DNA of 64,000 nucleotides. Source: Carpediemonas membranifera BICM. Its lineage: Eukaryota > Protista > Fornicata. Below are positions 3,472 through 59,924 of the stretch, piece after piece. Below the pieces are notes generated by a model. It worked only from the letters and a program-made list of their open reading frames with translations, was not told where the DNA came from and searched no databases. A program made the translations under genes and the position numbers. The stretch lies in contig JAHDYR010000038.1 of the NCBI GenBank assembly GCA_019828565.1, forward strand, positions 939,782 to 1,003,781. Reading direction: 5' to 3'. Positions within the stretch are counted from its first letter, which is position 1, and every line of letters starts with the position of its first letter.

Positions 3472-4400
3472 ATGAGCTCTGGGGTGAAGGATTCAGCAGG
3501 ATACGCCAGCATGATGTTTGAAGCGCTACTGAGGATGATTCCGAAGCTGCAGGAGTACATCGCGAGGTACCGTGGTGACGGTGGCGAGATGGATCCGGCT
3601 ATGCTTTTGCAAGCGATCCTACATCGTGTTCCTGATCTTCACCACGCTGATAAGAGACATATACGCGAGCTGTTGGCAGCTCGAAACTCAATCTGCCACA
3701 ATCGCGATGTTTCCAGTGCTGCCGATTTTGCATCCTTTGAGATGTCGGTCACATGCGTCATGTCGTTTGTGACGCAGAAGGTGGGCCGTGATGACGGCTT
3801 CAATGCCTTCATGGAGGCTCTGCACAACGAGGCGAACGGGGGCCGACCAGGACGCGAGTTCACCCGCAAGCCCCTTCCCGCAGGGACTCCCAGCCTGTCA
3901 GGATAGTCGAGAAGCGGGTTGAGGTACCTGTTTACATGACTGCGCTGGGTCCTGATCCTGATAAGCCGAGGATGGTGGGAAAATGCCAGCAGTTTTCGCC
4001 ACAGGGTGAGCATGCAGAGACTCAGACTGTGCGAGACCTAGAGGAGGCGTCTACTCAGACAGAGCTGTTGGTTGAGCCTGTTAGTACCCTGCGCACGCAT
4101 GAATTGTCTCGACGCGTCGTCAAGACCGCGATGTGCGATCTGCTTCGACAGAAGCTGAAGGAGAAGCCACCGACCGTATTCGCAGGGTCATGCGTTGTGT
4201 GTGGTGAGTCCGTGGACGATAGAGAGTGGGCCTGCACGCGGCGTGGCACCAAGACGCCGAAGTCTAGCTGCCGAGATTTGTTGAAGCAGGCCACTGTTGA
4301 TGCTTCAGCCGCAAGAGCAACAAAGAAGGCGCACGACACACGTAAGGTATATTTGACGGGAAAGGCAGTGGCCTGGCTTAACTCGAAGATGGAGAAATAA
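3472..4400 (+). CDS. HEPN protein copy 2 (frameshift in a G-run near 3840)
   Basis: Essentially identical to copy 1, with G5 in place of G6. Confidence 0.65.
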
Positions 4401-4702: not shown

Positions 4703-5631
4703 ATGAGCTCTGGGGTGAAGGATTCAGCAGGATACGCCAGCATGATGTTTGAAGCGCTACTGAGGATGATTCCGAAGCTGCAGGAGTACATCGCGAGGTA
4801 CCGTGGTGACGGTGGCGAGATGGATCCGGCTATGCTTTTGCAAGCGATCCTACATCGTGTTCCTGATCTTCACCACGCTGATAAGAGACATATACGCGAG
4901 CTGTTGGCAGCTCGAAACTCAATCTGCCACAATCGCGATGTTTCCAGTGCTGCCGATTTTGCATCCTTTGAGATGTCGGTCACATGCGTCATGTCGTTTG
5001 TGACGCAGAAGGTGGGCCGTGATGACGGCTTCAATGCCTTCATGGAGGCTCTGCACAACGAGGCGAACGGGGGCCGACCAGGACGCGAGTTCACCCGCAA
5101 GCCCCTTCCCGCAGGGACTCCCAGCCTGTCAGGATAGTCGAGAAGCGGGTTGAGGTACCTGTTTACATGACTGCGCTGGGTCCTGATCCTGATAAGCCGA
5201 GGATGGTGGGAAAATGCCAGCAGTTTTCGCCACAGGGTGAGCATGCAGAGACTCAGACTGTGCGAGACCTAGAGGAGGCGTCTACTCAGACAGAGCTGTT
5301 GGTTGAGCCTGTTAGTACCCTGCGCACGCATGAATTGTCTCGACGCGTCGTCAAGACCGCGATGTGCGATCTGCTTCGACAGAAGCTGAAGGAGAAGCCA
5401 CCGACCGTATTCGCAGGGTCATGCGTTGTGTGTGGTGAGTCCGTGGACGATAGAGAGTGGGCCTGCACGCGGCGTGGCACCAAGACGCCGAAGTCTAGCT
5501 GCCGAGATTTGTTGAAGCAGGCCACTGTTGATGCTTCAGCCGCAAGAGCAACAAAGAAGGCGCACGACACACGTAAGGTATATTTGACGGGAAAGGCAGT
5601 GGCCTGGCTTAACTCGAAGATGGAGAAATAA
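4703..5631 (+). CDS. HEPN protein copy 3 (same G-run frameshift)
   Basis: Identical to copy 2. Confidence 0.65.
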
Positions 5632-5934: not shown

Positions 5935-6865
5935 ATGAGCTCTGGGGTGAAGGATTCAGCAGGATACGCCAGCATGATGTTTGAAGCGCTACTGAGGATG
6001 ATTCCGAAGCTGCAGGAGTACATCGCGAGGTACCGTGGTGACGGTGGCGAGATGGATCCGGCTATGCTTTTGCAAGCGATCCTACATCGTGTTCCTGATC
6101 TTCACCACGCTGATAAGAGACATATACGCGAGCTGTTGGCAGCTCGAAACTCAATCTGCCACAATCGCGATGTTTCCAGTGCTGCCGATTTTGCATCCTT
6201 TGAGATGTCGGTCACATGCGTCATGTCGTTTGTGACGCAGAAGGTGGGCCGTGATGACGGCTTCAATGCCTTCATGGAGGCTCTGCACAACGAGGCGAAC
6301 GGGGGGCCGACCAGGACGCGAGTTCACCCGCAAGCCCCTTCCCGCAGGGACTCCCAGCCTGTCAGGATAGTCGAGAAGCGGGTTGAGGTACCTGTTTACA
6401 TGACTGCGCTGGGTCCTGATCCTGATAAGCCGAGGATGGTGGGAAAATGCCAGCAGTTTTCGCCACAGGGTGAGCATGCAGAGACTCAGACTGTGCGAGA
6501 CCTAGAGGAGGCGTCTACTCAGACAGAGCTGTTGGTTGAGCCTGTTAGTACCCCTGCGCACGGATGAATTGTCTCGACGCGTCGTCAAGACCGCGATGTG
6601 CGATCTGCTTCGACAGAAGCTGAAGGAGAAGCCACCGACCGTATTCGCAGGGTCATGCGTTGTGTGTGGTGAGTCCGTGGACGATAGAGAGTGGGCCTGC
6701 ACGCGGCGTGGCACCAAGACGCCGAAGTCTAGCTGCCGAGATTTGTTGAAGCAGGCCACTGTTGATGCTTCAGCCGCAAGAGCAACAAAGAAGGCGCACG
6801 ACACACGTAAGGTATATTTGACGGGAAAGGCAGTGGCCTGGCTTAACTCGAAGATGGAGAAATAA
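5935..6865 (+). CDS. HEPN protein copy 4 (frameshift in a C-run near 6552)
   Basis: ORFs 5935-6567 and 6536-6865 together rebuild the protein. Confidence 0.65.
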
Positions 6866-7492
6866 AAGATTCAGAGTCAATGGATATGTTTACACCTCTA
6901 TGCCACGACTTATGGGAAATCCGCCCTTATTAAGCTTCCTACAGGGAATATAGGCCATTTTGGAGGTATGAGCGACCGGGAGGGGGGAATGGGGGGCATT
7001 TATGGTATGGCTGGCCTCTACTCGGGCAGACTATTATAACGAGGCTCAGATCAGACCTCTACGGCCGCCTTACGAGGAGAAAAGAGCCAAGCAGCGCGCT
7101 AGCGGCCCATGGCCGCAGCAGAGCCCAGCCAAGCTCAGCTATAGGGTCACCTGAGACCCCGAATGACGTGCTGATCAGGTCGACTCCCATCTATTGACTT
7201 GGTAATTGCAGAGGGCGTCTGAACGCGATGTCCTAATAACCGACTTGGTCGGAGCGGTTCGGCGATGACTCCGTTGTATTCCACACCTTCTTTTAATGCC
7301 GAAACATGCAGTCCTTTAGAGTCAACGCGCGTCCTGTCCGTCAGGCGAAGGGCATTCAGCAGAGGCATTGCTGCGGTCTGCAGACCGCCCTAGCGCTTCA
7401 GGATGGCCAACTGCATGATCTGGACTCATGTCTATCAAATCCATTTTGATCACATCAAACATGTGTCAAATCCGGCAAATCGATTTTGCGAT

Positions 7493-7566
7493 AAAAAGGG
7501 GCAGAGGGGAGGAAGCGACCCATAAGGCGTACTTATGGACCATTTCCTCCCCCCTGCCCGTTTTTT
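7493..7566. repeat. Imperfect ~34-bp inverted repeat (hairpin, 5-nt loop)
   Basis: AAAAAGGGGCAGAGGGGAGGAAGCGACCCATAAG-gcgta-CTTATGGACCATTTCCTCCCCCCTGCCCGTTTTTT. Confidence 0.85.
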
Positions 7567-7730
7567 GAGTCTCAACTCTCAATTCCAATTTGTCCCTATG
7601 TTACTTTTTTCTAGCAGGATTTAAAGTTTGATACTGCGCATGCGTATTGCTTAGGTATAGCCAAGTACTACCATACCACTTTGAAGATCCAGCTCCGGCT
7701 CATCGTCGAGTTCATTTTTTCTTGCAACCG

Positions 7731-7799: not shown

Positions 7800-9128
7800 G
7801 TATGACCGCGCGTCCTGATTGTCACGATCCGAATGCTTGTGATCCCAGGATCGGGACGCATGCTCCTCGGATGTAGCGCTCTCAGAGCCCTCGGGCTGCT
7901 CAGCGACGAAGGCCTACACATATATAAGCCGCAGACGCCCTCGCAGGCGACTGACGGCGACGACGATATCGCGCTCGACCACCCGTACCTCGCTTGTGCA
8001 GTGGAGGACGAAGGCAGTGACCAGGTCAGCCTCATCAACATCCCAGACTCCGAGATAACTGGCGAGATAAGAACTCTAGCGGAGAAATACGCGCAGATAT
8101 TCGACCCACACCTCCCGGAGAGCAACGGTCTGAAGCCTATGACCATAGAGCTGACTGAGGACACCACAGTTCGAGTGGGCCCGCGCCCCTTGAACGCTCA
8201 GAAGAGGCATCTAGTGGAAGAGGAGGTGGCAAGACTGGAGAAGGAGGAGATAGTGCGACCGAGTGTCGGACCGTTTGCCTCCCCAGTCGTAGTAGTGTCG
8301 GGTGGACACAAGGGGTCTGACAAGATCCGATTATGCATAGACTATAAGAGTCTGAACGCTATCACAGTGAAGGACCACTACCCACTGCCGAACATCCAGG
8401 AGTTCGTGCGAGAGGCCGCAGGGTGCAAGTACTACGCGACACTTGACTTGCGTCAAGGGTACTACCAGCTCTCCATGGCGGAGGAGGACGTACATAAGAC
8501 AGCGTTCATCACCCCGGACAACTACATGGAGTTCTTGCGCTGCCCGTTCGGGCTAACCAATGCCCCATCCCGCTTCCAGCGGGAGATGGACAGGGTGTAT
8601 GCCCCACTGCTACACAAGGGGACCTCAGTATACATCGACGATATCTTCGTTTACGCTCGTTCGAAGGAAGAGTTCTTAGAGATCCTTGAGAGGGTCTTCC
8701 AGAGAACTGACGAATTCAACTTGCGACTCAAGGCGCCGAAATGCACGATAGGGGCAGCCGAAGCTGAGGTCGTGGGGTACATACTGGACGCGCAAGGGCA
8801 ACGACTAGCCCCATCGCGTATCGAGGCAGTGCTAGACATGCCACCGCCGACCAACTACAAGGCCTTAGAGCGGACGCTAGGCTCCCTTAACTACGTGTCG
8901 CGCTTTGTGGACGACTCCAGCAGAGTGCTGACCCCCCTGAATCGCCTGAGGAAGGACTCGCAGCCTGGACAACCGGTCAGTTGGACGAGTGAGCACCAGC
9001 AGGCGTTCGACAATTTCAAGCTGTGTCGCTAGCGTTCCCTGACCCTTCCAAGAAGTGGGAGTTGCACACAGACGCCAGCGCTACCGGGTTTGGAGGTGTA
9101 CTTTACCAACAGCAGAGCGAGGACATAC
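7800..9128 (+). mobile_element. Ty3/Gypsy pol fragment (protease tail, RT, start of RNase H), truncated at both ends
   Basis: RLCIDYKSLN, LDLRQGYYQ, CPFGLTNAPSRFQR and YIDD. After a frameshift, LHTDASATGFGGVLYQ. Confidence 0.95.
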
Positions 9129-10206
9129 TGTTAGAATGGCCAGTTAATCCGGGGATATACGGAGGATAAACGCAAATTCCTTATTCGTGCTTCAGGGCGT
9201 TCGAAGTCCTAAGAAGCAGCTGAAATGATAGATGCGAGTGCATTAATGACATATCCATGCTTGATGTAACATGTGCGAGATTGGTGGTCGAGCAAATTGC
9301 CTCTCGCATTTTAAGGTCGAAGGCAAAAGTGGTCGTACGACCAAGTGGCCTTGTCAGCAAAGTCTGTGTGTTCTAAAGAGTATCCTCTGTTGTTTTTATG
9401 CGTCAACTCCTTCTCAGTCGCCGGGAACTAATAACTGAATCAACCAATCAAAGAATGAAGCTGTCCCCCAGAAAGCAGGCCATACTACGGTGGTATATAG
9501 TCAGTATACATCATCGGAGTATGTTCGGTTTTCTGGGGGACAGATTCAATCTTCTGTATCTCAAAATTTGCAATTTTTTATCGGCGATAAGATGGAATCA
9601 GAAGACTTGGCTCAGAGCTCAAGTGCACTTAGCTCCATAGAGCTGAGATCGGCAATTGGCATGATCCACCGCCGCAGAAGGTGCCCAAAGAGGCGCTGAC
9701 GTTGAGCGGTCGATCATGGCCGTTTAACACATCAACGGGGGCCTCATCCCATGCAGTATCCATAACTTTTTACCATTTTCTTCTAGCTGCACTGGTTGGC
9801 AAATGAGCATTTTGTGTCGCCTTCATCATGGCAATATTCGAGATCAAATCCAGATTTGCTTTTTTTGTGCACAAGGAGCACAACAGCAAATTCGCAAGTA
9901 ATGCAGATGAAAATCAGATGAATCTTAATCAGGCACTCTCATACACACACTGCTTTAGTTTCGGAGCCAACGTCCATAAACTGAAGGAGTTCTGAACATT
10001 GTTTCACCAATTGTGTGAAACTGGTGAAATTGTGAAATAGTGTTGAAACGGCCAGAGAAGAAGAAGGAACCCCGGCAGCGCAGTTGTAGCTGCTCTTATA
10101 GAGCTATAGCAACAGCCAAATTGTCTGATTTATCTCACAGACCGTTGCGCATGTACCTGCCTAGTTTTTGTACAAAAATCTTGTTTTTTTAAACTCTACA
10201 GAAATC

Positions 10207-12747
10207 ATGGTTGCTCATATTGTGTTCGAGAGCCACATCGGTACAATATATGATGACCAGCCACGCTCAGTTGAGCGCATGAATTACCTTCTTGGCTGTA
10301 CCTACTTCGCCATGGTCGGAATTGGCCTCAACTCCGCCAGAACAAGACCTCAGCGCGAGCAATTCTGCCAGCTCGTCCGCGAGATGGAGGAGGCGGACCT
10401 GATCTCCCAGCGCATTCACGACGCAAGGTTCTTCCGCCCTCCAGCAGACTCCCGTCCCTTCCAACGTGCCGCAACCGCACACGGAAATCAACACCCTCCT
10501 CACCCTGTCTTCGTACGGGACGATTACCGCACCCACGCCATCCAGGAGCGTGCTGTGCAGGACAACAACGACTCAGAGGAGCGCTCCGCCAACTTTTCTG
10601 AGATCATGGAGCTCACATCGATCCTGATGTACGTCCGCAATGGCTTCAACTCGACCCAAGAGCTCTTTAAGCTCATCAACAACATCTCCCGCCGGCTTGG
10701 AAAGCCGATCTCGAAGAACAAGACCGCGGAGGTGCTCATTAAGGACCTTGGAATTGACATGACCAGAATATCTGGTGTCTCAGAGGCCCTCACTGAGGAG
10801 GAGCGCGCCTTCGTCAAGCATCTCGTGCCGTGCAGGTCGGTCTCAGGCAATACAACATGGCGGCGTACCATGTCCGGCACGCAGTCGCGACTTGAGTTCA
10901 CGAACCGTTTGACTGTAGCCGACGGAGCCGAGCCGACTCCGTTTTTCGACCACGACCTCGTCGCCGACCACACTTGGGAGCGACCGACGCTCACCCTCCA
11001 CTATGACAGCGAATCCGACGCTGTCCAGCACTACCAGTCCCTCAAAGGCAGTGTAGGTATCGCCCATCTGGGCAAGCGACTGAACAGCTCGACCTGGGAC
11101 AAGGTGGAAACGGTGTGGTTCGATGGCGTGTGCTATCTGCAGCAGGCAGTGCTTCACCCGGAGTGGCTCGAGTCTGACCAGACGAACTTCGAGCGTTGCT
11201 CTCGTGCCCTTCAGGACCCAGGCCATGTCGAGTTCCAACCACTAAAACTACTCCTGTGGCTCGACGCATGGAAGGGACATACCGCAACGTTCAAGATCCG
11301 CATCTACGACCCGTCAGGCTTCACGTTCCCTAACCGCATCACTCCCCCCTTCCGACTCGTTGAGTGTCTTTGCCGGTGAGAAGGAGCTGACGGAGGAGGG
11401 AAACCTTCAACTCGTTGAGGAAGAAGTCGAGCGGATCTATCAAGCCCTCATACCGATCAGAGGAACTGACCAGGTCACCACCTTCGACCAAGTCATCGTC
11501 ATGGGCGATCACGCGGCCATCAGGAAGCTGTCATCCGGCATCGAGGGTAATGGAGGGCACTATCCCCAGCCCTTCAACAGCATCCGTCGAGACCACAAGG
11601 CGCTGCACCCCATTCCGGCGCACTCTCGGGTCACCTTGCATGATTTGCTCGAGCAGAAGGCAGCGTTCCACGCCGTGCAGGCCGACCCCGACCGTGTGCA
11701 GGACCCGAAAGAGGAGTATGGCAACTTCTCCGACAAGAGGGCCATCTTCGAGAACCGGCCAGAGCCCCGAGTCATCCACACGGAGCGAGTTGTCTTTTGT
11801 CCTCCGATCATGCACAACTCGCACCGCCTGCTCGAGCAAGTGGCACGGCTATGCGCCAGCTTCCCCGCTGATCGGAACGCAACTGCCGTAGACAAGCGCA
11901 AGCTCCAGCGCATGTCATCCAACCGCAGTATTGACCGCACTGTCGGGTGCAACGAGCAGTCTGCTGCCAGAGTTCGCATGGCGAACACCACGAACGAGGA
12001 TTACGAGGCTCTTCCTGAGTCCGTCCAAGATATTGTGCGACTCATTGGCTATCTCCAGGCTCTTTACTACTCAACCGAGCCTGTCACCGACAGCAAAGTC
12101 GCATTCCACTTCTTGGCCGCGTCCATGTGCCACCTGTTCCACGTCATGCTCAGTCTGCAGGCACACCAGACAAAGCTGGCGTTGCTCCCTCCTGGGCAAG
12201 CAGACAAGGCGGAGAAGCCATGTGCCCAGACACTCTATGTCAACAGCAGGCTCACTGCCCAGCCTCTTCTTCACGATCATCTCCGAATTCCTCTTTTTTT
12301 ACCTCCTCGAGGAGTTCTTTGAGAGAGAGTTCATCAAGAACCAGGAGGTCCGAGCCGAGTTGCACAGGTCGGCCATGATCGAGAAGCTGTGTTTGACCGA
12401 GCAGACCACCCTCATCTGCACGTTCTTAACGGGTATTCGCTCGTTCGGTCGCCAGGACTACTCAGTCCCCCCCGCTGAACAGGCTTCGTCGTGTCCGAGT
12501 CCACCAATGCTGCAGACAAGCTCGCTCATGGTTCGCCATTCGCAGCCACATGGAGGCAAGGCACCAATTCCATGCCACGGCGGCGGTGGTGCGCCTCTTC
12601 CAGGAGCTCGTTGACGAGATGTGGCAGTACGTCAACGATTATACGGCTTTGGCATGGGACGAAGAGTCTGGGGTGATGGTTTGCGAGTTGGCAGACATGG
12701 GTGAGGAGCTTGTTTGCTGCATTTGCGGTCATGCACGCGCTGAGTAG
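10207..12747 (+). CDS. RAG1/Transib-like DDE transposase (~845 aa after repairing three homopolymer frameshifts near 11345, 12295 and 12470)
   Basis: Candidate catalytic D in LWLDAW (11263), D in VMGDHAAIRKLSSGIEGNGGHY (11507; compare RAG1 [20 protein letters not shown]), PIMH, LYVNSRLTAQP (compare RAG1 NYFHKTLAHVP), and E in LLEEFFE (~12309-12323). Confidence 0.65.
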
Positions 12748-12871
12748 TGAGTAAAGGAGTTTTATTGGTCAGTACATCCCATTTGGTGTGTTTCCCCCAA
12801 CTACCAAATTTTTTTTTCAACATTGGTAGTTTCACAATTTTCACATTACGTCACTTGTTTGGTGAAAAACA

Positions 12872-13797
12872 ATGGAAACGCCACTTCCGACATGGCTGAC
12901 GATGAATTTATCGCAACACAAGGCCTATATTCAATATGTCAAGCTTTCAGACAAGTCTGAGCTCTTGCCGTCTGTCAGGGCCTTCTTCAACAGAGATCTG
13001 GCGACTTCGAACCTCGACTGTCTGAACTACTCATTCGTCATGTATGTCAGACCCACTACACTTCTTGTTAACACAGTCTCATCGCAATTCGTGGGGTTGA
13101 GATGGACAACATCAAGGCTGCATGCCTTCTCTTCCGCGAGTCGTACAGGGAGGGGCAGACCCTGAGCGGACAACTGCACCAGGAGCGGTTTGTCATCGGC
13201 TTACGGACAGCCGTCTCCTGCAGAGGTCTTGGGTTCGCGAGGGTGCTTCTTAGCATAGCATCTGCCGAAGAACTCGTCCGACTGCAGTGCGACAAGCGAC
13301 TCCAGGACATGTATGCGTCCTTTGGCCTCAAGGAGTCATCGGACCCGTCGCAGGTCGAGCAGCTGGTGGACACGGGGGGCAACCCACTTGCCATTGTCAC
13401 GATGGAGGGCACGATGGGTCCCAACAAGTGGACCAACCTCGGCAAGAGCCTGACAGAGTGCTGTGGGATGATAATGCAAGGCTCTACGTTGATCCGCGTG
13501 ACCAACCATGGTAATAGACTTGATCAGCACGCTCATGGGATGCCTGCTTCCGACAAGAGGAGTGTTGACTCGTTCGTGGAACGCACCCGTGTGTCCGTGC
13601 GCCGTGAACGTGCGGCAAAACGGCCTAACGTCACCCGAATCAGGCAGAAGTTGATGATTATCCGCCATTACAACCTTCGTTCTTTCACGCTGGTCAAAGA
13701 GATCAAGGAAACGAGGACCGAGATGCGTAAGGAGAAGAAAGCCAACTTCTGGGACAGTGAATGGAATATTTCCGTTGAGGATGACGAAGAAGTGTAA
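12872..13797 (+). CDS. GNAT-family acetyltransferase; intron 13042-13076
   Basis: A 35-nt GTATGT...TTAACACAG intron joins the two ORFs in frame. Motif A CRGLGFARVLL is followed by VRLQC...MYASFGL. Confidence 0.7.
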
Positions 13798-13821
13798 ATG
13801 AAATGAAAATAAAACAAGAAT

Positions 13822-14526
13822 TTATAGCTCCTGTGCCGAACACTCTAAGTAGTAATTCATGATGGCTTGGTATACCTTGCGACGCAGCACATCACGCGAT
13901 TCAGCCTCAGCACGTTCCGCATTCCGCTTGGCAATGACAGAAGTGAGCTGACTGAGTGTCTTAGCCTCCTTCTTCAGAACTCTGGTGGGTCTGGCGAAGA
14001 TGAGATCCGCGTCGCGGTCACGGCAAGGCTTGCTCAGGACGAGCTTGACGTCATCGACCGTCACACCGCACGATGAAGCAGCGAAGGCATGGACCTTAGC
14101 CCGGTAGGCGATGGGAATGCGGTGAAAGGCATCATCCATCTCGCGGACAGTCGCGATGAGTGGGTCGTCCGTGTCCAGCTCATCTGTCTGGGCGTCAAGA
14201 CTGAGGAGAGCCTTGAAGCGGTGACGCTTGTCCTCATCACCGCCTCCCTGCCACTTGCGGCTGATCTCTTCGACCGACTGGAGATTGCCGTAGAGCTTGT
14301 CCTTCTTCAAGGAGGCTACTTTCATCTTAGGGACCTCGGCGGCGAACTTCTGGCTGAAGTCGACAACCCATCCGTTTGCGCGGGTAATATCGTCATTATT
14401 AAGGAGGAAATTGCTGATAAAGGTCTGAACGATCTCGATGGGCGTCTTGTGAGCTTTTCGGGCTGTTTTCGTGGACTTGTTGGACTTGCTCTGGCTCTTT
14501 TGCTGCGCTTTCTTGCCAAGAGCCAT
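13822..14526 (-). CDS. Hypothetical protein with a Lys-rich N-terminus (may start at 14585 if a 20-nt intron is real)
   Basis: 234-aa ORF with protein-like composition, convergent with the GNAT gene. No recognised motif. Confidence 0.65.
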   Translation of the reverse strand: MALGKKAQQKSQSKSNKSTKTARKAHKTPIEIVQTFISNFLLNNDDITRANGWVVDFSQKFAAEVPKMKVASLKKDKLYGNLQSVEEISRKWQGGGDEDKRHRFKALLSLDAQTDELDTDDPLIATVREMDDAFHRIPIAYRAKVHAFAASSCGVTVDDVKLVLSKPCRDRDADLIFARPTRVLKKEAKTLSQLTSVIAKRNAERAEAESRDVLRRKVYQAIMNYYLECSAQEL

Positions 14527-14910
14527 TCTCCTCTCCTTTTTGAGCTTCAGTGGCCTGTATATTGCCTTGTTTACTTCTTTGCCATCGTTGTTTCCTTAAA
14601 ATGCGTGTGAAAATGTGAAATGAACTGTGACTCTCGACATTGCTGCGCAGCTATGGTATTCCAACGGCACAGAACGGGTTTATAGCATGCATATGATCCA
14701 TTCTGGTGCCTTTATCCTCTATAACCAACATCAGTCCATCAAAATGAATCTTGCAACAGAATACTCATCCACACGCATCGAGAACGAAAAAGAAGCATAT
14801 AACCAACATCAACAACCTAATAGAAGGCTGCATGCAAGCGTAGAGCTCTCCTAGTCAATTCTTCATTTTCACCACCATCGATCTCCACGTCAGGATGAAA
14901 CCGTGCGCCC

Positions 14911-14961
14911 AAAAGCTCAGAGATGCCGTTATAGATGATATAACGACGTCTCTGAGCTTTT
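14911..14961. repeat. 23-bp inverted repeat, 5-nt loop, 2 mismatches
   Basis: AAAAGCTCAGAGATGCCGTTATA-gatga-TATAACGACGTCTCTGAGCTTTT. Confidence 0.9.
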
Positions 14962-15001
14962 CAGCGATTTCAGTTTCTGGCCATGGATAAGCTACAAATC
15001 C

Positions 15002-15267
15002 TGTCAATGTTGTCCTCAGAGGACACTGAAAAATTTAATCTGTGTCCTCTGAGGACCAAATTGACAAAAATCGAAAAATGGAGCGAGGAGATGTCCATCG
15101 AAAAACGGCCAAAACAGCGCAGGTGCAGAATGAGCTGAAAAATCGGCCAAGGGGTAGCTCTTGGGTCTTTATGGCTGATCGGAGGTATTTACATGACAGC
15201 TGGCAATATTTATTGAGATAAAACGTATTTCATTTTTCGAGAAAGTCTTCTGAGGACCAAATTGACA
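15002..15267. repeat. 25-bp inverted repeat (15002-15026 / 15042-15066) plus a third arm copy at 15245-15267
   Basis: TGTCAATGTTGTCCTCAGAGGACAC-15 nt-GTGTCCTCTGAGGACCAAATTGACA. The third copy, GTCTTCTGAGGACCAAATTGACA, abuts the ATG at 15268. Confidence 0.9.
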
Positions 15268-17435
15268 ATGGTTAACGAAGACATCATCTCTCTCGGCAAA
15301 CTGAAGGAGACAATGCTTGCTCCTGACGATTCTGGTATGTCACTTTCATTTTCACGGTCCTATTTACACAGATGATTCATTCCGTGCATACGACGCCCTT
15401 TCGTCCACAAAGAGCCGTATAACCTGGCTGCAAGATCACGGCATCGTCTCTGATGACCCTCTGTTCTTCGTTTGCGTCCGTCTGATCAGCATTCGTACGA
15501 TCAACGTTGTTTTCGGGTTCCCGTTGAAGCGCACTTTAAGCCAGCACGTTCACGACTATGGAGTTGCCAAACTACGCGCGATATGTGACGCAACTAACCG
15601 CAACTACCTCTGCGAGGTCGACTTTGACTCTCCCGACACAATTGAGGCATTCCGACGGAAGTTTTGTGACCACTTCACCGCCAAATCTGTTCATAAGGCT
15701 CTAGTCGGCGTCGACTCGCTCCCCTGTTGAGAAGCAGGTTGAGATTTACCGCGCATTCCACCTTGTGTTGCGCCACAAGGACTCGAAGAAACTCGATTCT
15801 CGTGTTCCGGCAGGCCAATTTGGCCAGTTTATCGCCCACGCCCAGCTCAGCAAGAAGCTGTCCTTCGCTGGCTCAGAGAAGCTGGCCGAGGAGTTGGCTA
15901 AGATCGGTTCGCTCGATCCGTCAGCTCCTCTGAAGAGGAAGATCGCTCGTCTTGAGAAGGAGCTCGCCTCATCGACTGCTGCTCTGATGAAGGTCCAAGA
16001 GGAGTTAGTCCGGGCCCAGGATCGCTCAGCAGCAGCCACCAAGCCTTCTTCCGTCGTTGCTGCCCCTCAGCCGCTTCCGGTTGTCGACGCAGAGTCCACG
16101 ACACACGATGAATTTTCCGACACTGACGAGTCCGAGTCCGATGGCCACTCTGAACCGGCCGCCATGCAGGGTGACGGCGTTCCTTTGCCACAGTCTGATC
16201 AAGACGTCGACGTAGAGTCCGATGTGGACGACACAGACACCGTTGGTTCTCTCCTTCAGCAGCTAGACGACACCATTGCAGGCCTTGATGATGTCCCTGA
16301 GTCTGTGCGCTTGTTGGAGCAGTACGAGCCCTTGATAAAACGGCTTGCTGAGGAGAGGGAGGCGCTTGAACAGGCTAACAGAGAGTCTGAGGAGTCCCAG
16401 AAGAGACTTGAAGCTGAGTTAGGTCAGCAGAAGGCCGAGGATCAGGCGATCCATCAGTTTACTCAAGCAGAGTTGGCACGGGCGAGTGAGGCTGGGCTTG
16501 AAGCGCTCGCCGATGAACTCGAGGACAACTGGGCTGAGCTTGTCAGGCGCGCCGAGGAGGCAACAGTGGAGCTTGACCGCTACGTTCCTCTCGCTGCCTT
16601 GATGGTACTGTTCCAGAGGAACAATGTGACTGGAGCCTTATGGACTCGGATCAATAGCACCATGATGAGGTACGGGGGCCAGAAGTTCATAACGGTCCCA
16701 CCCCTCGACCTCGGTCTGTCGCCAGAGATGAAGGCTATCATCAAACAGCACTCTCCGACGCCTGCCAATGTTCCCCCTATGCAGATATACTTACGGAGCG
16801 ACGTTGATAGGCAGAAGTACATCGACGTGGAGTACGACAAGGTAGGCGAGCGAGTTCTCAAAGATCGTAAGAGTTGGTGGAAGATTGCAGTCAACCCGGA
16901 TGGATTGTGCATCGGCTACTGCCTGCAGAAGGTTGAGAATGGCGAGTTCGACAAGAAGTTTGCGGCAGAGGAAGTGGCAGCAGTGAGGGAGGAGGTGCGC
17001 GCCTGGGGATTCTCCGATGCTGGCGAGAGGCTGAGGCTTGAGACGTCTAACGTGTTCGTGCCCACCCTGATGTTCGACGATGCCACTGATTGGTACAGCA
17101 ACTTTGGTGTCATGGCCTGGTCAGCTCTGAAGAGCAAGACTGTAGTCGTTATCTGGGTCAAGATGTTGACGTACCATGACAAGTATATTGTGCGGATGCA
17201 TTTGACGGAAGTTTATGAGTCCGGCATGGTCCGGCGTGGATCTGATGAAGATGTGGCTGCGGCGCAAGCTATTGTGGTCGTCAAGGATGAGCATGCGACG
17301 CTATTTGTCCGCAAACGTTCAAAGGGTGGTAAGAGAAAGGCTCATACGACTTATATCAAGCGCAAGGCAGTCGATAAGGATCGCGAAAAGAGAGTTGTTG
17401 ATGCCGAGGACGTTAAGCGTGGAGTTCCCGAGTAA
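15268..17435 (+). CDS. Coiled-coil/acidic protein with a C-terminal OTU-like cysteine protease; intron 15335-15371, C-run frameshift near 15722
   Basis: VNPDGLCIGYCL (OTU D-G-x-C), WYSNFGVMAWSALKSKTVVVI and KDEHATLF (candidate catalytic His). A 37-nt GTATGT...TTTACACAG intron. Confidence 0.65.
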
Positions 17436-17461
17436 AAAAAGAGATGTTTTGACATTTTAAT

Positions 17462-18271
17462 TCATTTCTTCCGCTTCTTGAGTGCCGGATACTGCTCCAG
17501 GAACCTTGTGAGATAGTTCGGATGAGAAATGGGCAGACTCGGGAACCTAGCAATGGTTAAGACCTCACCCGCATCAAAGAAGATCTCGCCGTAACTGATA
17601 CGAAGAAACTCTTCGGCCTGAATGACGTTCGTCGACTCAACCGCAAGGACTGGAAGGTCCTTGAGCAAACGGTTGGTGAACTGGCAGTTGGTGTCACTCT
17701 CACTGTGGTTGATGAGGTGTACACCAATGCCTTCACCTTCGCCGGCGTCGACGTGAAGGTTGCTAGCGTCGAATGAAATGCTGTGTAAAGGCATAATGAA
17801 CAATGAACAAACACCATGTTGCTGTTATTCGCGTGGTAGTCCTCGTCGGACACAATCCTACCGGCGTAAATGCCGAGGAGCTTTCCGGGCTCAATTGCGG
17901 CAGTTGCAATGAGGCCTCTACCCACGTCCGTGTGGTCGGGAGCCAGACAAGGCTGCACCTCAACGGCAATGGAGGGGTGGGTCAGCCGGGTGGATAACCA
18001 ACTCGGGGGTTCGAGGGGAGGAAGGTCCTTCTCGGCCTCCTTAAGCTCCCCTGATCGACTCCTCGGGAGTGTTTGGGTAGATCGCGGCGACCAGATCCGG
18101 ATGCAGTGCCTGAGTATGCACAACGGATTCAATGATGGAATCTTCGCTTGAGGAATCCTCCTGAGAATCATTTGAAGGCGCAGACGGCGGCGTCTTGCCC
18201 GCAGTGGACGTAATGGGTATTCTGATACCCCCAGGCTGCGGCTTTGGTGGGAGCGCCTTTCTTCTCGCCAT
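17462..18271 (-). CDS. SET-domain methyltransferase; intron 17781-17812, G-run frameshift near 18050
   Basis: GRGLIATAAIEPGKLLGIYAG, INHS..NC and EEFLRISYG..FF. A 32-nt GTTTGT...TTTACACAG intron restores the frame. Confidence 0.8.
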
Positions 18272-18360
18272 CTGATTTTTTTTGCAAACGGACACGCGGT
18301 ATTTCTCGGGATTGATGGGGCCGTCTCACACCGTAAAGGACACACATACAATATCTTATC

Positions 18361-20060
18361 TGTAACACCAGAATGCTTGCTTATTGTGGTCCATATCCTT
18401 CTGTTCAGCGCCCGGAAGTCTATCACGAATCGAGTCTTGTCCCTCCCCTTGGGGACCAAGAAGGCCGGGGAGCCGTGAGGCGATGCCGACGGCTCGATGA
18501 ATTGGTGAGCCCGGAGCTCTTCGACGTGGGCATTCATGGCCGGAACCTTACTGTCCGGGATGAACATGGGGCGCGCCACCACCGGCGAGGGGTCGTCCAC
18601 CTGTGACGCCAGGTCATATGGCATCAGACGGCTCGGCTGGCCCACACGGTCGGCGAAGACTCGCTGGTACTGTCCCAACAGCCGGTCCTGCTCGGCTCGG
18701 TTCCCGTCCGAGAGGCAGTAAGCCTGGAGGGTGGGGGTCTGCTCCGGCACGAGCTCGGCCTCCTCGGCGGTGACCTCGCCCTCGCGGTGGTCGGTCTCCA
18801 GGGCCGGCAAGATCCCCAGCTCGACCATCGTGGGGTAGCCTATGATGATGTCGTACCCCGACCTCAGCAAGTAAGTCGTTACCCTGGTAGTGCACCCGCG
18901 GGGCGTGAACGCGGAGGGGTCAAACGTCAGGCTCAGGACGGTCGCCTGGCTGACCCTAAGCTTCCCGGCGGGGGTCTTGACCTCAACCTCCCGCCCTGTC
19001 ACTACTCGTGATCCCGCATCCAGAGCTAGGTCTGGGTCTACAAAGTCCGCGGAGGCGCCGCAGTCGAACAAGATCGACTTGACCGTCCGGCGGGTGAGGC
19101 GGCCGGAGACGATCGGCAACATCTTACGCAGCGTCCCCTCTGGGTACAGGGAGTGAAGCGACACGCACTTGCGGTCATTTACACGACCACAGAACTTGGC
19201 CAGGTGGCCGGTGCGTCCGCATGTCTCGCACTTGGCACGGCCCTTGTCGCACTTGGGGGCAATATGACCCTGAGCCCCACAGTTGTAGCACGTGGGCTGC
19301 CACTTCTGCTGCCACTTTTCCTGCTCCTCAGGCTCCCGCTCCGCATTGCGCGGCGAGGTGGGGGCCCCTGCGGTGGTGTTATGGCGCCGGTCGGAGTATG
19401 GGCGGTCACGCCGGTGGCCCCGACGGCCCGTAAATGATGTCCCAGCCCTTTCTCGATCGCGCCTCTCGGGTCGTTCGCGCAGGTTACGCGGCTCATCGGC
19501 GCAGAATCGCTTAACGAACGCCTGCGACTCGTGAACATCGCTGGCGATCACTAGAACCGTAGACATGGTCTCTTCGAGCGTCATGCCCTCCGTGCGCTCC
19601 TTAAGCGTGGACCAGGTGTTTCTGGCGCCCGGTCCGCGGAATGCGCGAAGATACAGCTCTCGTATCGTTCCTGCGGCGACGGATGCCATGCTCAACAGCG
19701 GTAGTAGCTGCCTGAAGTGGGAATTCACGGCCAGCACCTCGTTGGGGGAGAAGCCACGTGCCTCCTTGCGGAGAAGGTCGAGCTGGTTCTCCTCGCGGCG
19801 AGGACGAAGGGCGGCGCGGAGTTTCGCCTCCACGAGCAACGTACACTTTGTAGGCGGCGAGAAACTTCACGAGGGCATTAAAAGCTGGAGTCTACAAATA
19901 GGGTGCGTCCATTGAGTGTAAGTATCGATACTGTGGTCTCTAGGACGAAGAAGGTTTTAATGAACAAGGCTAACTTCCACTGAGACTGCTGAGGACTATC
20001 TTCCTCTGCATCTTCCGCTGTCAATAAATAGATACAAGAAATATATGGTCAGTGACCACA
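18361..20060 (-). mobile_element. Truncated Ty3/Gypsy element: 5' LTR, gag with two CCHC knuckles, protease, start of RT
   Basis: CYNCGAQGHIAPKC, CETCGRTGHLAKFC, LFDCGAS, SPAFLVPKG..RFVIDFRALN. Confidence 0.92.
19932..20060 (-). repeat. Putative 129-bp 5' LTR
   Basis: Termini TGTGGTC...GACCACA (7-bp inverted ends), 19 nt upstream of the gag ATG at 19912. Confidence 0.75.
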
Positions 20061-20303
20061 TCGGTAGGGAGATCGTCTTCTCCAGGGCTTCCACAAAGCG
20101 TCTTCTTCGTGGACGTCAGCACAGCTGCAAACATCACAATCGCTCACACGTCGTCTCATTGTCTCATCAAATGACGCCAAGGACAGCTGACAGGCTGTGC
20201 CCGGCGTCAGCTTCACTTCTGACCACGGCATCAAGTGTTTGCCAAGGCAGATCCCGGCCATTCGTGCAATGGCTCGCCAGCCGTATCAGATTATTTTATA
20301 ACT

Positions 20304-23216: not shown

Positions 23217-24204
23217 TTAAAAGCTGACGGACATGAGCCCGCCGCACTCAGATTCCATGTCCGAGCGCACTTCGTCAAAGAAGGGATGGGCCAGTGCAGA
23301 CTTCGCGTCGATTCTCTGCGAAGGGTCGTATGCCAGCATCTTCCTGATCAGATCAATGGCTTGGGGGTCGGCCCCGGGGAGGACGGACTCGAGGCCTTGG
23401 GGCCTGAACTTGGGCAGGGTTGGCTTGTAGTCGGGCAGCTTGGTCACGCCAGGCCACTCGGCCTCAGTGGGAGTACCGAGAACCTGGAAGATCTTGAAGA
23501 GCTCGTCAATCTCGGAGATGCCAGGGAAGAGGGCCTTCTTGGTGATCATCTCGGCGACTGGGTAAACTGCGGGTTTGGGGAACAAACGAATGGTGCCGAC
23601 TGACCACATGTCTACGGGTGTAGAGTAGTGCTTGGACCCGAGCAGGATCTCGGGGGCGCGGTACCAGAGGGTGACGATCTCGTGTGTGTACTGCCGCACA
23701 GGCACGCCGAACGCACGTGCAAGACCGAAGTCAGCAAGCTTCAGGTTGCGGTTAGAGTCAATGAGGAGGTTTTGGGGCTTGAGGTCGCGGTGGATGACGC
23801 GGCGGCAGTGGCAGAAGTAGAGACCGTAGACCATCTGGTAGGCCATGCGCTTCAGAAGAGTGCCCTTGATGCCGTTAGGAGTGTCGTCTGTGAAGCGCTT
23901 GAGGTCGGAGTCGCAGAACCTGTGTTAGCTTGAAATGAGGGACAAACTCCATGACGAGCCAGAGACGGGCGTCCTGAGTGACAGCATCGATAAGCTGGAC
24001 AATAGTAGAGTGCTGAAGCTCCTTTAGGAGAGATACTTCGCGAATAGCAGTTCCGGGAACGCCTTCATCGCCATGCTCAAGGCGGATCTTTTTGAGCGCA
24101 ACAATTTTGCCCGATTCGATGTCACGCGCCTTGTGAACAACGCCATAAGTGCCTTCGCCAAGTTTCTCTAATTTCTGGTATCTCTCAATGCCTGATGGAG
24201 CCAT
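23217..24204 (-). CDS. CDK1: Cyclin-dependent kinase, CDK1/2-like; introns 23920-23947 and 23558-23587
   Basis: [38 protein letters not shown]. The 28-nt and 30-nt GTTTGT introns give MEFCDSDLK and VGTILAEM. Confidence 0.95.
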
Positions 24205-41447: not shown

Positions 41448-41688
41448 TCAGGATTTGAAGCACAAGCAGCCGCCCTTTGGTGCGAATGGGTTAGAAGAAT
41501 CGCCTGGTGTCAGTAGAGGATCCTCTTTTCCAGAAATATAAGTGATGAGGCTGTGTAATAAGGGAAATTCTAACAAACACTTCTGATGCCTCACTAACTT
41601 TCATGATTCGCTTTGAAGCCTCGCATTGGAGCTTAAGGCGCTCATTTTGAGTCAATTGCTGCTTCAGAAGCTGCTGGGAACGATCCAT
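41448..41688 (-). CDS. Heterotrimeric G-protein gamma subunit (70 aa); intron 41551-41578
   Basis: Spliced product ...RIMKVSEASEVLITYISGKEDPLLTPGDSSNPFAPKGGCLCFKS* has the DPLL and NPF motifs and a Cys four residues from the C-terminus. Confidence 0.85.
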
Positions 41689-58600: not shown

Positions 58601-59924
58601 CTCCGAAAGGAGCTGATACAGATCGCCCACAGAGGACACCACGGCGCCAAGGCTACCATCGAACGCCTGAGAGCAGACGGCTATACCTGGACAGGCTGCA
58701 CAGCAGATGTCGAGGAGTTCGTCGCCTCATGTGACGAGTGCCAGAAAGCTCGCCTACGCAACTTCGCCGAGGCAGAGCTCCGCACAACAGCAGTGTACAA
58801 ACCGTTCCACACTGTCGCAGTGGATACTATTGGTCCAATCCCGGCAGACGCAGTCGGCTCCAGATACATCACTGTTATGGTCGATATGTTTACTCGCTAC
58901 ACTGAGTTGGCCGCGACGGACGAGAACACAGCTGATGCAGCGTCAGAGGCCCTCTGGCGCCAGGTGATTACACGTCATGGGACTCCCCTGTTCATCAAGT
59001 CCGACAACGGGCCTGAGTTCACCGGCAACGTCGTCAAGGCCCTGCTCGAAAGCGCGGACATCACCCAGCATTCACCCTCCCCTACCACCCTCAGTCGAAT
59101 GGGCTGGTAGAGCGTCGTAACGCGGAGGTCATGAAGCATCTTCGCTGTTTGATCCTCCAATTCGACAAGTTCTCCCGTTGGAGCGACCTCCTTCCGGTAG
59201 TTCAGCTGCTGCTGAACACAACCACCTGCAGCGCCACTGGGGTCACACCCCACGCCATGCTGTATGGAGACCAACTCGACCCCAGCTCCACAGTCGCTAG
59301 AATCCTCCGACCGAGCGAAAATGACTCGCCCCTTGCCTCAGCCTCAGCCTACATCACTTTACTTCGAGCACACCTCTCCAAGTTGACCTCTAGGGCGGCC
59401 GAGAAGCAGCGCGAGACTGTAGACAAGCGCCTCGCCAAGGCTAACGCCGACCGCCAGCCGACTAGCTTCAAGGAAGGCGACCTCGTCCTGCTCAACCGGA
59501 CGAAGACCCCAAAGCTGCATGGCTTCGCCGGCCCGTTCAAGATTCTCGCCATCAAGGACAACAACACCCTTCAGCTGGTCGACCTTTTCGAGAGCGCCCC
59601 CTTCATGGCTCACGTAGACCAGGTCCTTCCTTTCAACACCAAGTCGGGGCTCAGCCGCCTGAAGAACCTCGCCGCCTCCGACGAGCAGACGTACGTCGTG
59701 CAAGGCATCGAGAAGCACCGTCGCCGTAACGGCACACTGCAGCTCCTCGTCTGCTGGGAGGGCGACTACGATCCCACATGGGAACCCGCTGACGGGCTCC
59801 GCCACGTCACTGCGGCACGTGACTACCTCAAGTCCCACAAGCTCAAGCTTAAGGGGGGTAGGATGTCATAAGGCATCCACGTCCGCAGTTTATGTAAATG
59901 TTCCAATCTCTTCGCCCCGGCACA
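55660..59924 (+). mobile_element. Chromodomain-bearing Ty3/Gypsy gag-pol with PPT and a short 3' LTR beginning at 59864
   Basis: LIDSGS protease, YIDD RT, TDAS RNase H, H..H/CDEC, DTIGP/SDNG/VER integrase, chromodomain YVVQGI...LVCWEG...TWEP, and PPT AAGGGGGGTAGGA before TGTCA. Confidence 0.95.

Follow-up and report, generated by a model that had tools for sequence, protein, structure and literature searches.

A very probably young, multi-gene DNA transposon of Carpediemonas membranifera, best placed in a deeply diverged CMCT-like lineage, with a transposase of RAG1-like predicted fold

Among DNA transposons, the CMCT clade (CACTA-Mirage-Chapaev-Transib) comprises EnSpm/CACTA, Mirage, Chapaev, Transib, Plavaka, ESTA, Lanisha and RAG1, and its hallmarks are CA..TG termini, target site duplications (TSDs) of 2-5 bp and two motifs, C(2)C and H(3-4)H; in PlavakaB elements the termini are CATCA and the TSDs 2-3 bp long (PMC12730594). 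TET/JBP dioxygenases are found in fungal DNA transposons (Kojima 2025, PMC12730594). Here we analysed a stretch of 64,000 nucleotides from the metamonad protist Carpediemonas membranifera BICM (assembly GCA_019828565.1, contig JAHDYR010000038.1, positions 939,782 to 1,003,781 of the forward strand), hereafter referred to as the window. The assembly amounts to 24.2 Mb in 69 contigs, the host is unusual in that ORC/Cdc6 and further core DNA-processing complexes are missing from it, and there is no description of transposons in its genome paper (PMC8516963). The window contains a truncated copy of a large element that is very likely a young, recently active cut-and-paste DNA transposon bounded by terminal inverted repeats (TIRs). 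For the family of this element, the best placement is a CMCT-like lineage that is deeply diverged and so far undescribed, because its termini, TSD and predicted transposase fold agree with the clade but the zinc motifs and any detectable sequence similarity are absent.

The borders of the element were set by aligning the window to fetched genomic copies, designated below by L and C numbers. Left of position 9124 every copy has a different flank, and this position is the start of the element. Past 18401 all the other copies run on identically for about 2.85 kb before their flanks part, whereas the window copy diverges, and the 33 nt that come next in the element are not found in the window. The window copy is a right-end-truncated copy of a 12.13-kb element that has lost its last 2.85 kb or so, with two genes (F and G) and the right TIR. 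An earlier note, made from the letters of the window, had proposed a large multi-gene transposon at 10000-18360 and had found neither TIRs nor a TSD. Its borders have to be revised, since the element starts 0.9 kb earlier and is cut off at 18401; the second TIR and the TSD are invisible in this copy because its right 2.85 kb was lost. The full copies have perfect 48-bp TIRs (CATACTG...CAGTATG), of which the window copy retains the left one only, and a 2-bp TSD of varied sequence (TG, CG, GA, AG, CG, CA, TC and TT) was present in 8 of 8 full copies, the chance of one random 2-bp flank match being 1/16. The search for empty sites that the note had recommended yielded two paralogous ones, for two copies that lie in repeated DNA; when mapped onto the paralog, the left and right flanks of each copy overlap by exactly 2 bp. 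For copy C34 the uninterrupted target is at window positions 58925-59721 (overlap 59322-59323) and in L019, and for copy C54 at window positions 6791-7588 (overlap 7190-7191) and in L027.

Intact copies of the element are 12,127-12,138 bp long. An 8.36-kb stretch of it had at least 12 full-length and 8 partial matches in its own genome, all at 99-100% identity, so that the genes are not single-copy, as the earlier note had allowed they might be. At least 12 near-full copies differ by 0.1-0.2%, with 9-25 substitutions per copy relative to the majority base over 12.1 kb. The small indels between copies are mostly found within homopolymers, which fits with a Nanopore-based assembly (PMC8516963). 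Gene F has 18 identical genomic copies, and gene G has 15 at 100% identity and 17 at 99% or more. Segmental duplication, as an origin of the copies, was ruled out by the TIRs, the TSD and the unrelated flanks. The proposal of a large multi-gene DNA transposon was thus borne out by the copy number, the TIRs and the TSD.

The features of the element in the window are as follows.
9124-18401, + strand: truncated element copy of 9278 bp; the flanks diverge left of 9124, and the sequence shared by the other copies continues past 18401
9124-9171, + strand: left TIR of 48 bp, starting with CATACTG; its reverse complement matches the right end of full copies perfectly
10207-12747, + strand: gene A, predicted transposase, frameshifted in this copy at 11369 and near 12294-12317
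12872-13797, + strand: gene B, with exon 1 at 12872-13041, a predicted 35-nt intron at 13042-13076 and exon 2 at 13077-13797
13822-14594, - strand: gene C, whose intact form of 253 aa is at L002:5319-6080 (-)
14906-15267, no strand: palindrome-rich divergent spacer between genes C and D, containing inverted repeats with 28-nt arms
15268-17435, + strand: gene D, with exon 1 at 15268-15334, a predicted 37-nt intron at 15335-15371 and then a long exon
17462-18273, - strand: gene E, SET-domain protein, with exon 2 at 17465-17780, a 32-nt intron at 17781-17812 and an upstream exon from 17813

The open reading frames (ORFs) agree with the order and orientation given in the earlier note for five packed genes (A+, B+, C-; D+, E-). 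Intact gene A is a single intron-less ORF of 846 aa (L032:1534-4071) with the likely start MVAH, and it is uninterrupted in copies C42 and C7; introns are excluded by these intact copies. The window gene is split into three ORFs because of frameshifts, caused by a private extra T at 11369 and T-runs of variable length near 12294-12317. The hypothetical protein J8273_3986 matches the transposase ORF at 100% identity. When 1.84 billion representatives were searched exhaustively with a profile, 19 transposase-family proteins came up, and those looked up were from C. membranifera, from assembly GCA_002919055.1 or from ENA/JGI/Logan records; protein homologue searches with gene A, gene F and the OTU region of gene D returned Carpediemonas proteins only. 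By these searches, the transposase family appears to be confined almost only to Carpediemonas so far. Many transposase subfamilies, at 28-60% identity, are present in its own genome, several of them in multiple identical copies.

Sequence searches cannot recognise this transposase, which had no match in Pfam or the PDB either alone or as a family of 16 members, so fold prediction is needed for such elements. The core (residues 290-846) was modelled with AF2 from an 18-sequence alignment, with a predicted local distance difference test (pLDDT) of 82 and a predicted template modelling (TM) score of 0.87; a fold of the whole transposase from a three-sequence alignment (pLDDT 32) was not used. With Foldseek, the top 44 matches in the PDB were RAG1 or BbRAGL chains (E 7e-9 to 4e-6, TM 0.40-0.48), followed by HzTransib (E 3e-4) and then Hermes. 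VIA-align gave RAG1 a Z value of 12.8 over 385 residues (RAG1 550-1004), BbRAGL 11.8 and Transib 8.8. The nearest named models in the ESM Atlas were Plavaka (TM 0.56), the plant CACTA Transposase_21 (0.56) and RAG1 (0.51-0.53). In the core model, two Asp residues lie at the ends of RNase-H strands 1 and 4, and the LLEE helix comes after an all-helical insertion. This layout, an RNase-H fold with a helical insertion, is predicted to be that of RAG1, and the predicted fold together with the conserved D, D and E motifs points to a transposase of the DDE/RNase-H type.

The family alignments contain the conserved blocks WxD353GW, K-x-R-x-x-D, GD434HxA...G...GG-x-YP-x-PF, PP-x-MH-x-S, RTTGCNEQ and LLEE-x-FER (E701, E702, E705), and a C-terminal H-x-C ... 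C-x-C. The probable catalytic residues in the model are D353 (WxDGW), D434 (GDHxA) and one Glu of LLEExFER (701-705). Alternatively, the transposase might be a member of a different superfamily that combines an RNase-H core with a helical insertion, for example the P element or hAT, given that the P element transposase obtained a VIA-align Z value of 12.4, close to that of RAG1, and that ISCth4 and Hermes are also in the VIA-align list. However, the P element alignment extends over 292 residues, as against 385 for RAG1, and in Foldseek Hermes reached only E 7e-3 and TM 0.18 and the P element was outside the top 50. P and hAT elements have 8-bp TSDs, whereas that of this element is 2 bp, and we regard an origin in these superfamilies as extremely unlikely.

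The ends of the element (CATACTG..CAGTATG, 2-bp TSD) agree with those of the CMCT clade. The CATACTG tip is kept in three lineages: the window subfamily, a second subfamily (L020, right end at L020:5718-5733) and an element in locus L041 of assembly GCA_002919055.1, which is 11.6 kb long, with 74-nt TIRs and a 2-bp TSD. Like the CMCT elements Plavaka and CACTA, the element has 5'-CA..TG-3' termini, has a 2-bp TSD and is large and multi-gene, and its predicted transposase fold resembles those of Plavaka (PF18759) and CACTA Transposase_21 at the TM value given above. It differs from them in its metamonad protist host, in its accessory set (a PHD protein, a His/Cys protein, SET and OTU), in a transposase for which HMMER found no sequence similarity to their Pfam models, and in zinc motifs that are not conserved.

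The earlier note had called the transposase RAG-like and had predicted, for a Transib, TIRs starting with CAC and a 5-bp TSD. These, with the heptamer CACWRTG, are the features expected of a true Transib/RAG-like transposon, a direct relative of the RAG1 ancestor. Such a relative is favoured by the best solved-structure matches, which are RAG1, BbRAGL (ProtoRAG) and HzTransib, and the element shares with this group a short conserved terminal heptamer, CATACTG, identical at 5 of 7 bases to the heptamer of the recombination signal sequence. However, in 8 of 8 copies and at the two empty sites the TSD amounts to 2 bp and not to 5 bp, the tip is CAT rather than CAC in all three lineages, and the Pfam RAG1 models had no match at E up to 10 with any of the 16 family members. 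Furthermore, the predicted CACTA and Plavaka models match equally well or better, and none of the ORFs of the element was identified by Pfam as a kelch or RAG2-like gene, in agreement with the note. A direct relative of the RAG1 ancestor is therefore very unlikely, and Transib proper is excluded because of the 2-bp TSD and the CAT termini. As far as the model goes, the element is RAG-like at the level of the predicted fold only and is not a Transib, so that the first half of the earlier assignment stands in this restricted form and the second does not.

The part of the element that is missing from the window copy contains gene F (341 aa, + strand) and gene G (406 aa, - strand), which are convergent; each reads as a single ORF in which introns are not evident. 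Paralogs of F (48-59% identical) and G (26-40%) are found about 8-10 kb from transposase paralogs (30-56% identical) at more than 20 places in the genome and, by genome coordinates, keep their orientation relative to them. In GCA_002919055.1, too, both loci have F-like and G-like genes next to the transposase. Genes F and G travel with the transposase in every subfamily checked. Because accessory genes remain linked to the transposase both in a second genome and in other subfamilies, the possibility raised in the earlier note, that homologues elsewhere are unlinked, can be dismissed.

In gene G, the C4HC3 ligands C283, C286, C305, C308, H313, C316, C330 and C333 are invariant in three lineages, and behind them is a further Cys cluster that has a conserved Trp. 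Pfam indicated PHD_4 (E 0.013, below threshold), and the weak matches in the PDB were PHD, RING and FYVE fingers. By these motifs, G would be a protein with two PHD/cross-brace zinc fingers. Gene F has an N-terminal CxC...H..C, and two hydrophobic strands in its product are followed, one by an invariant Gly-His and the other by an invariant Cys; sequence searches of Pfam and the PDB with it gave nothing significant. With an atlas lead to DUF6642/CHAT, the F protein may be a peptidase of clan-CD-like type. For this protein a caspase-like fold, for which the only grounds are the invariant Gly-His and Cys and the atlas lead, was unsupported by a PDB profile search, which returned nothing.

Gene E is confirmed as encoding a SET-domain protein, as the earlier note had proposed, on the criteria of a profile score above the family threshold and the NHS and C-terminal Tyr motifs. 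The two SET halves lie in different frames in 9 of 9 copies and give weak Pfam SET matches at profile positions 1-37 and 47-105 (15.6 and 18.5 bits for the window exons alone, the exons of genes B, D and E having been searched separately and not as spliced joins). The paralog in the second subfamily, at L020:1842-2510(-), reached a Pfam E value of 1.5e-11 and 45.1 bits against a cut-off of 22.4 (PF00856), and it shares 35% and 50% identity with the two window exons. Contigs of three runs from one sample contain the joint 17780/17813, with exactly 17781-17812 skipped (GT..AG on the minus strand), and removal of these 32 nt joins the SET halves in frame. The contigs are most likely to derive from spliced RNA, because all DNA copies keep the 32 nt.

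Contigs of runs X2 and X3 leave the genome at 18273, on the 5' side of the minus-strand SET transcript, whereas a contig of run X1 is colinear to 18397. X3 continues beyond 18273 with 24 further letters that had no match in the window or in the 42 loci compared; this extension could be an upstream exon located elsewhere, a leader sequence or the result of a chimeric contig.

The intact ORF of gene D (L002:6809-8935) encodes 708 aa, with an OTU-like domain at about 16893-17303 in the window. Its C-terminal domain aligns with a protein of the L041 element (E 3e-6), and a third protein is equally placed in the second subfamily; Asp-Gly-x-Cys, Trp and His residues are invariant across these three D-type proteins. 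Searches of Pfam with gene D gave no match, including to OTU (PF02338), and PDB sequence searches with it returned nothing significant. With a small D profile, four of the five best PDB matches were OTU domains aligned on the Cys loop (E 0.5-2, not significant), and the atlas lead was also to OTU (score 0.87). Gene D probably encodes an OTU cysteine protease, which would make it a probable deubiquitinase. The OTU assignment of the earlier note thus retains the support of the conserved DGxC and His loops in three lineages, although not of Pfam.

At places in the genome where the transposases are only 30-49% identical (e.g., C19:6090-6926 and C26:218595-219431), the middle part of D, an acidic coiled coil at residues 208-490, shows 80-91% identity, which suggests that this region was exchanged recently between co-resident subfamilies.

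The assignment of gene B to the GNAT acetyltransferases, also made in the earlier note, could not be confirmed. A motif-A-like string, RGLGFARVLL (motif A being R/Q-x-x-G-x-G/A), is its sole support, and neither exon had a match in Pfam or the PDB; on the motif, a GNAT enzyme is possible but doubtful. Gene C likewise gave nothing significant against Pfam or PDB sequences. It has the N-terminus MARSKQ and also contains KSTKTARKAHK, and its N-terminus in intact copies resembles a histone H3 tail. The product of gene C could be a substrate or decoy for the SET and PHD proteins of the element. Contigs of X1 cover positions 13873-14574 of this gene. The spacer between genes C and D contains palindromes at 14906-14966 and 15002-15066 and a third arm at 15245-15267 that abuts the ATG of gene D at 15268, in accordance with the palindrome-rich divergent spacer described from the letters alone.

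The micro-introns noted earlier in three genes were found in B (35 nt), D (37 nt) and SET (32 nt). They share one consensus, GT[AT]TGT...ACACAG, and each restores the reading frame; that of the SET gene is the one spliced out in the contigs. The pattern occurs five times in the window, compared with 0.22 in shuffles, and two of the five occurrences are outside the element. The introns are therefore considered to be of host type, because the pattern recurs outside the element, far above expectation. The outside matches, GTTTGT...ACACAG, are 28-nt stretches at 23920-23947 (-) and 41551-41578 (-) and are probably micro-introns of host genes. An old core of three element genes, the intron-less transposase, F and G, with a cargo taken from the host, fits with this distribution.

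It is therefore necessary to consider whether SET, OTU, B and C are captured host genes that travel as neutral passengers, with no role in the life cycle of the element. Capture of host gene fragments is known from large elements of the CACTA type, and the host-type introns in B, D and SET, as opposed to the uninterrupted transposase and the F and G genes that show none, are consistent with such an origin. Relatives of B and C, moreover, were not detectable in the two GCA_002919055.1 loci or in the examined part of L020. However, the second subfamily has the gene order OTU-SET-F-G, with SET and OTU in the same order and orientation as in the window subfamily, although its F is only 58% identical, and the OTU-like domain with the same catalytic loops is found in the L041 element, whose transposase is only 27% identical. 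Several copies also retain intact ORFs, and transcripts are apparently made from SET and C. The retention of SET and OTU across subfamilies argues for a cargo kept by selection, and we consider neutral passengers rather unlikely.

The reading of the element as a young, CMCT-like transposon with a RAG1-like transposase and a chromatin-directed cargo has to be weighed against several points. Current movement is without direct proof (neither an insertion polymorphism nor an excision footprint was obtained). The CMCT zinc motifs C(2)C and H(3-4)H are not kept in the transposase, which has no CxxC; after GDHxA there is at most one Cys, within YPCPF in some members and replaced by Q or S in the window subfamily, and the His motif of the family is MHxSH, with the spacing H-x2-H. 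The 16 family members found no match among Pfam models and PDB sequences, the fold was predicted from an alignment of 18 sequences, motif and secondary structure were used to place the catalytic triad, without residue-level superposition, and the VIA-align score of the P element is near that of RAG1. Database thresholds are not reached by the OTU, PHD and peptidase-like calls, the GNAT call is from a motif only, and the runs showing splicing, all from one sample, were only guessed to be RNA.

If the element is such a transposon, the transposase would bind the conserved CATACTG tips, excise the element and integrate it with a 2-bp stagger. The PHD fingers of G, the SET protein and the OTU protein might act on histone or ubiquitin marks at the element or at its targets, and such marks could guide integration and target choice, or could keep the element expressed and allow it to escape silencing. 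The comparison with RAG2 rests on a second element-encoded protein with a PHD finger, which has a different architecture from RAG2. It is conceivable, although we think it quite unlikely, that in a deep-branching protist a RAG1-fold transposase with its own PHD reader, SET writer and OTU eraser reads or sets the chromatin state of its targets or of itself, so that the RAG1-RAG2(PHD) logic would be realised in an independent or an ancestral form, and that the family is a new superfamily-level branch linking CACTA/Plavaka with Transib/RAG.

The fungal transposons with TET/JBP genes offer another comparison, and in work by Iyer et al. in 2014 these dioxygenases are said to be carried by fungal DNA transposons presumably to escape silencing. 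In both cases a cut-and-paste element carries enzymes whose action could alter epigenetic marks, but here SET, PHD and OTU are predicted to address histones and ubiquitin rather than DNA methylation. The present family extends the CACTA-Transib-RAG1 group to metamonads with a transposase beyond the recognition of sequence searches. Its young copies, some with intact ORFs, and its sharp ends make it a practical system for the question of how different target staggers arise from RAG1-type enzymes, and also a suitable one for asking whether an element uses its own histone and ubiquitin enzymes and readers for target choice or for the avoidance of silencing.

The retroelement debris reported on both sides of the element was recovered in the following flanking features.
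7833-9032, + strand: left flank, reverse transcriptase (RT) fragment of a retroelement (Pfam RVT_1, E 9.8e-31), repeated elsewhere in the genome
18402-19839, - strand: right flank, gag/protease/RT-start fragment (Pfam zf-CCHC zinc knuckle and Asp_protease_2)

The right flank is not common to the other element copies, and a 760-aa ORF results from the chance continuation of its frame into the SET gene. The insertion site of the L041 element is a Ty3/gypsy pol gene. Several insertions (the window copy, C34, C54 and L041) are thus hosted by other repeats, and this could reflect targeting of repeat-rich chromatin or merely better survival there.

Both subterminal regions of the full element contain long imperfect hairpins (L002:948-1056 and L011:2758-2873, with arms of 52 nt and 58 nt), and subterminal repeat arrays of the CACTA style were not seen in these regions. 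The hexamer TTTCAC/GTGAAA occurs 18 times in the element, compared with 5.7 +/- 2.5 in shuffles, and forms clusters upstream of genes A, B and C, as well as close to the right end. In the coordinates of copy C34 the clusters are at 881-911, 3705-3737, 5480-5488 and 11993-12024, with window equivalents at about 10004-10034, 12830-12862 and 14605-14613. The hexamer may be a common promoter motif or a protein-binding motif. Beyond the right flank, a 104-bp sequence at window positions 20061-20164 has more than 35 near-identical genomic copies and looks like a miniature inverted-repeat transposable element (MITE) or another short dispersed repeat.

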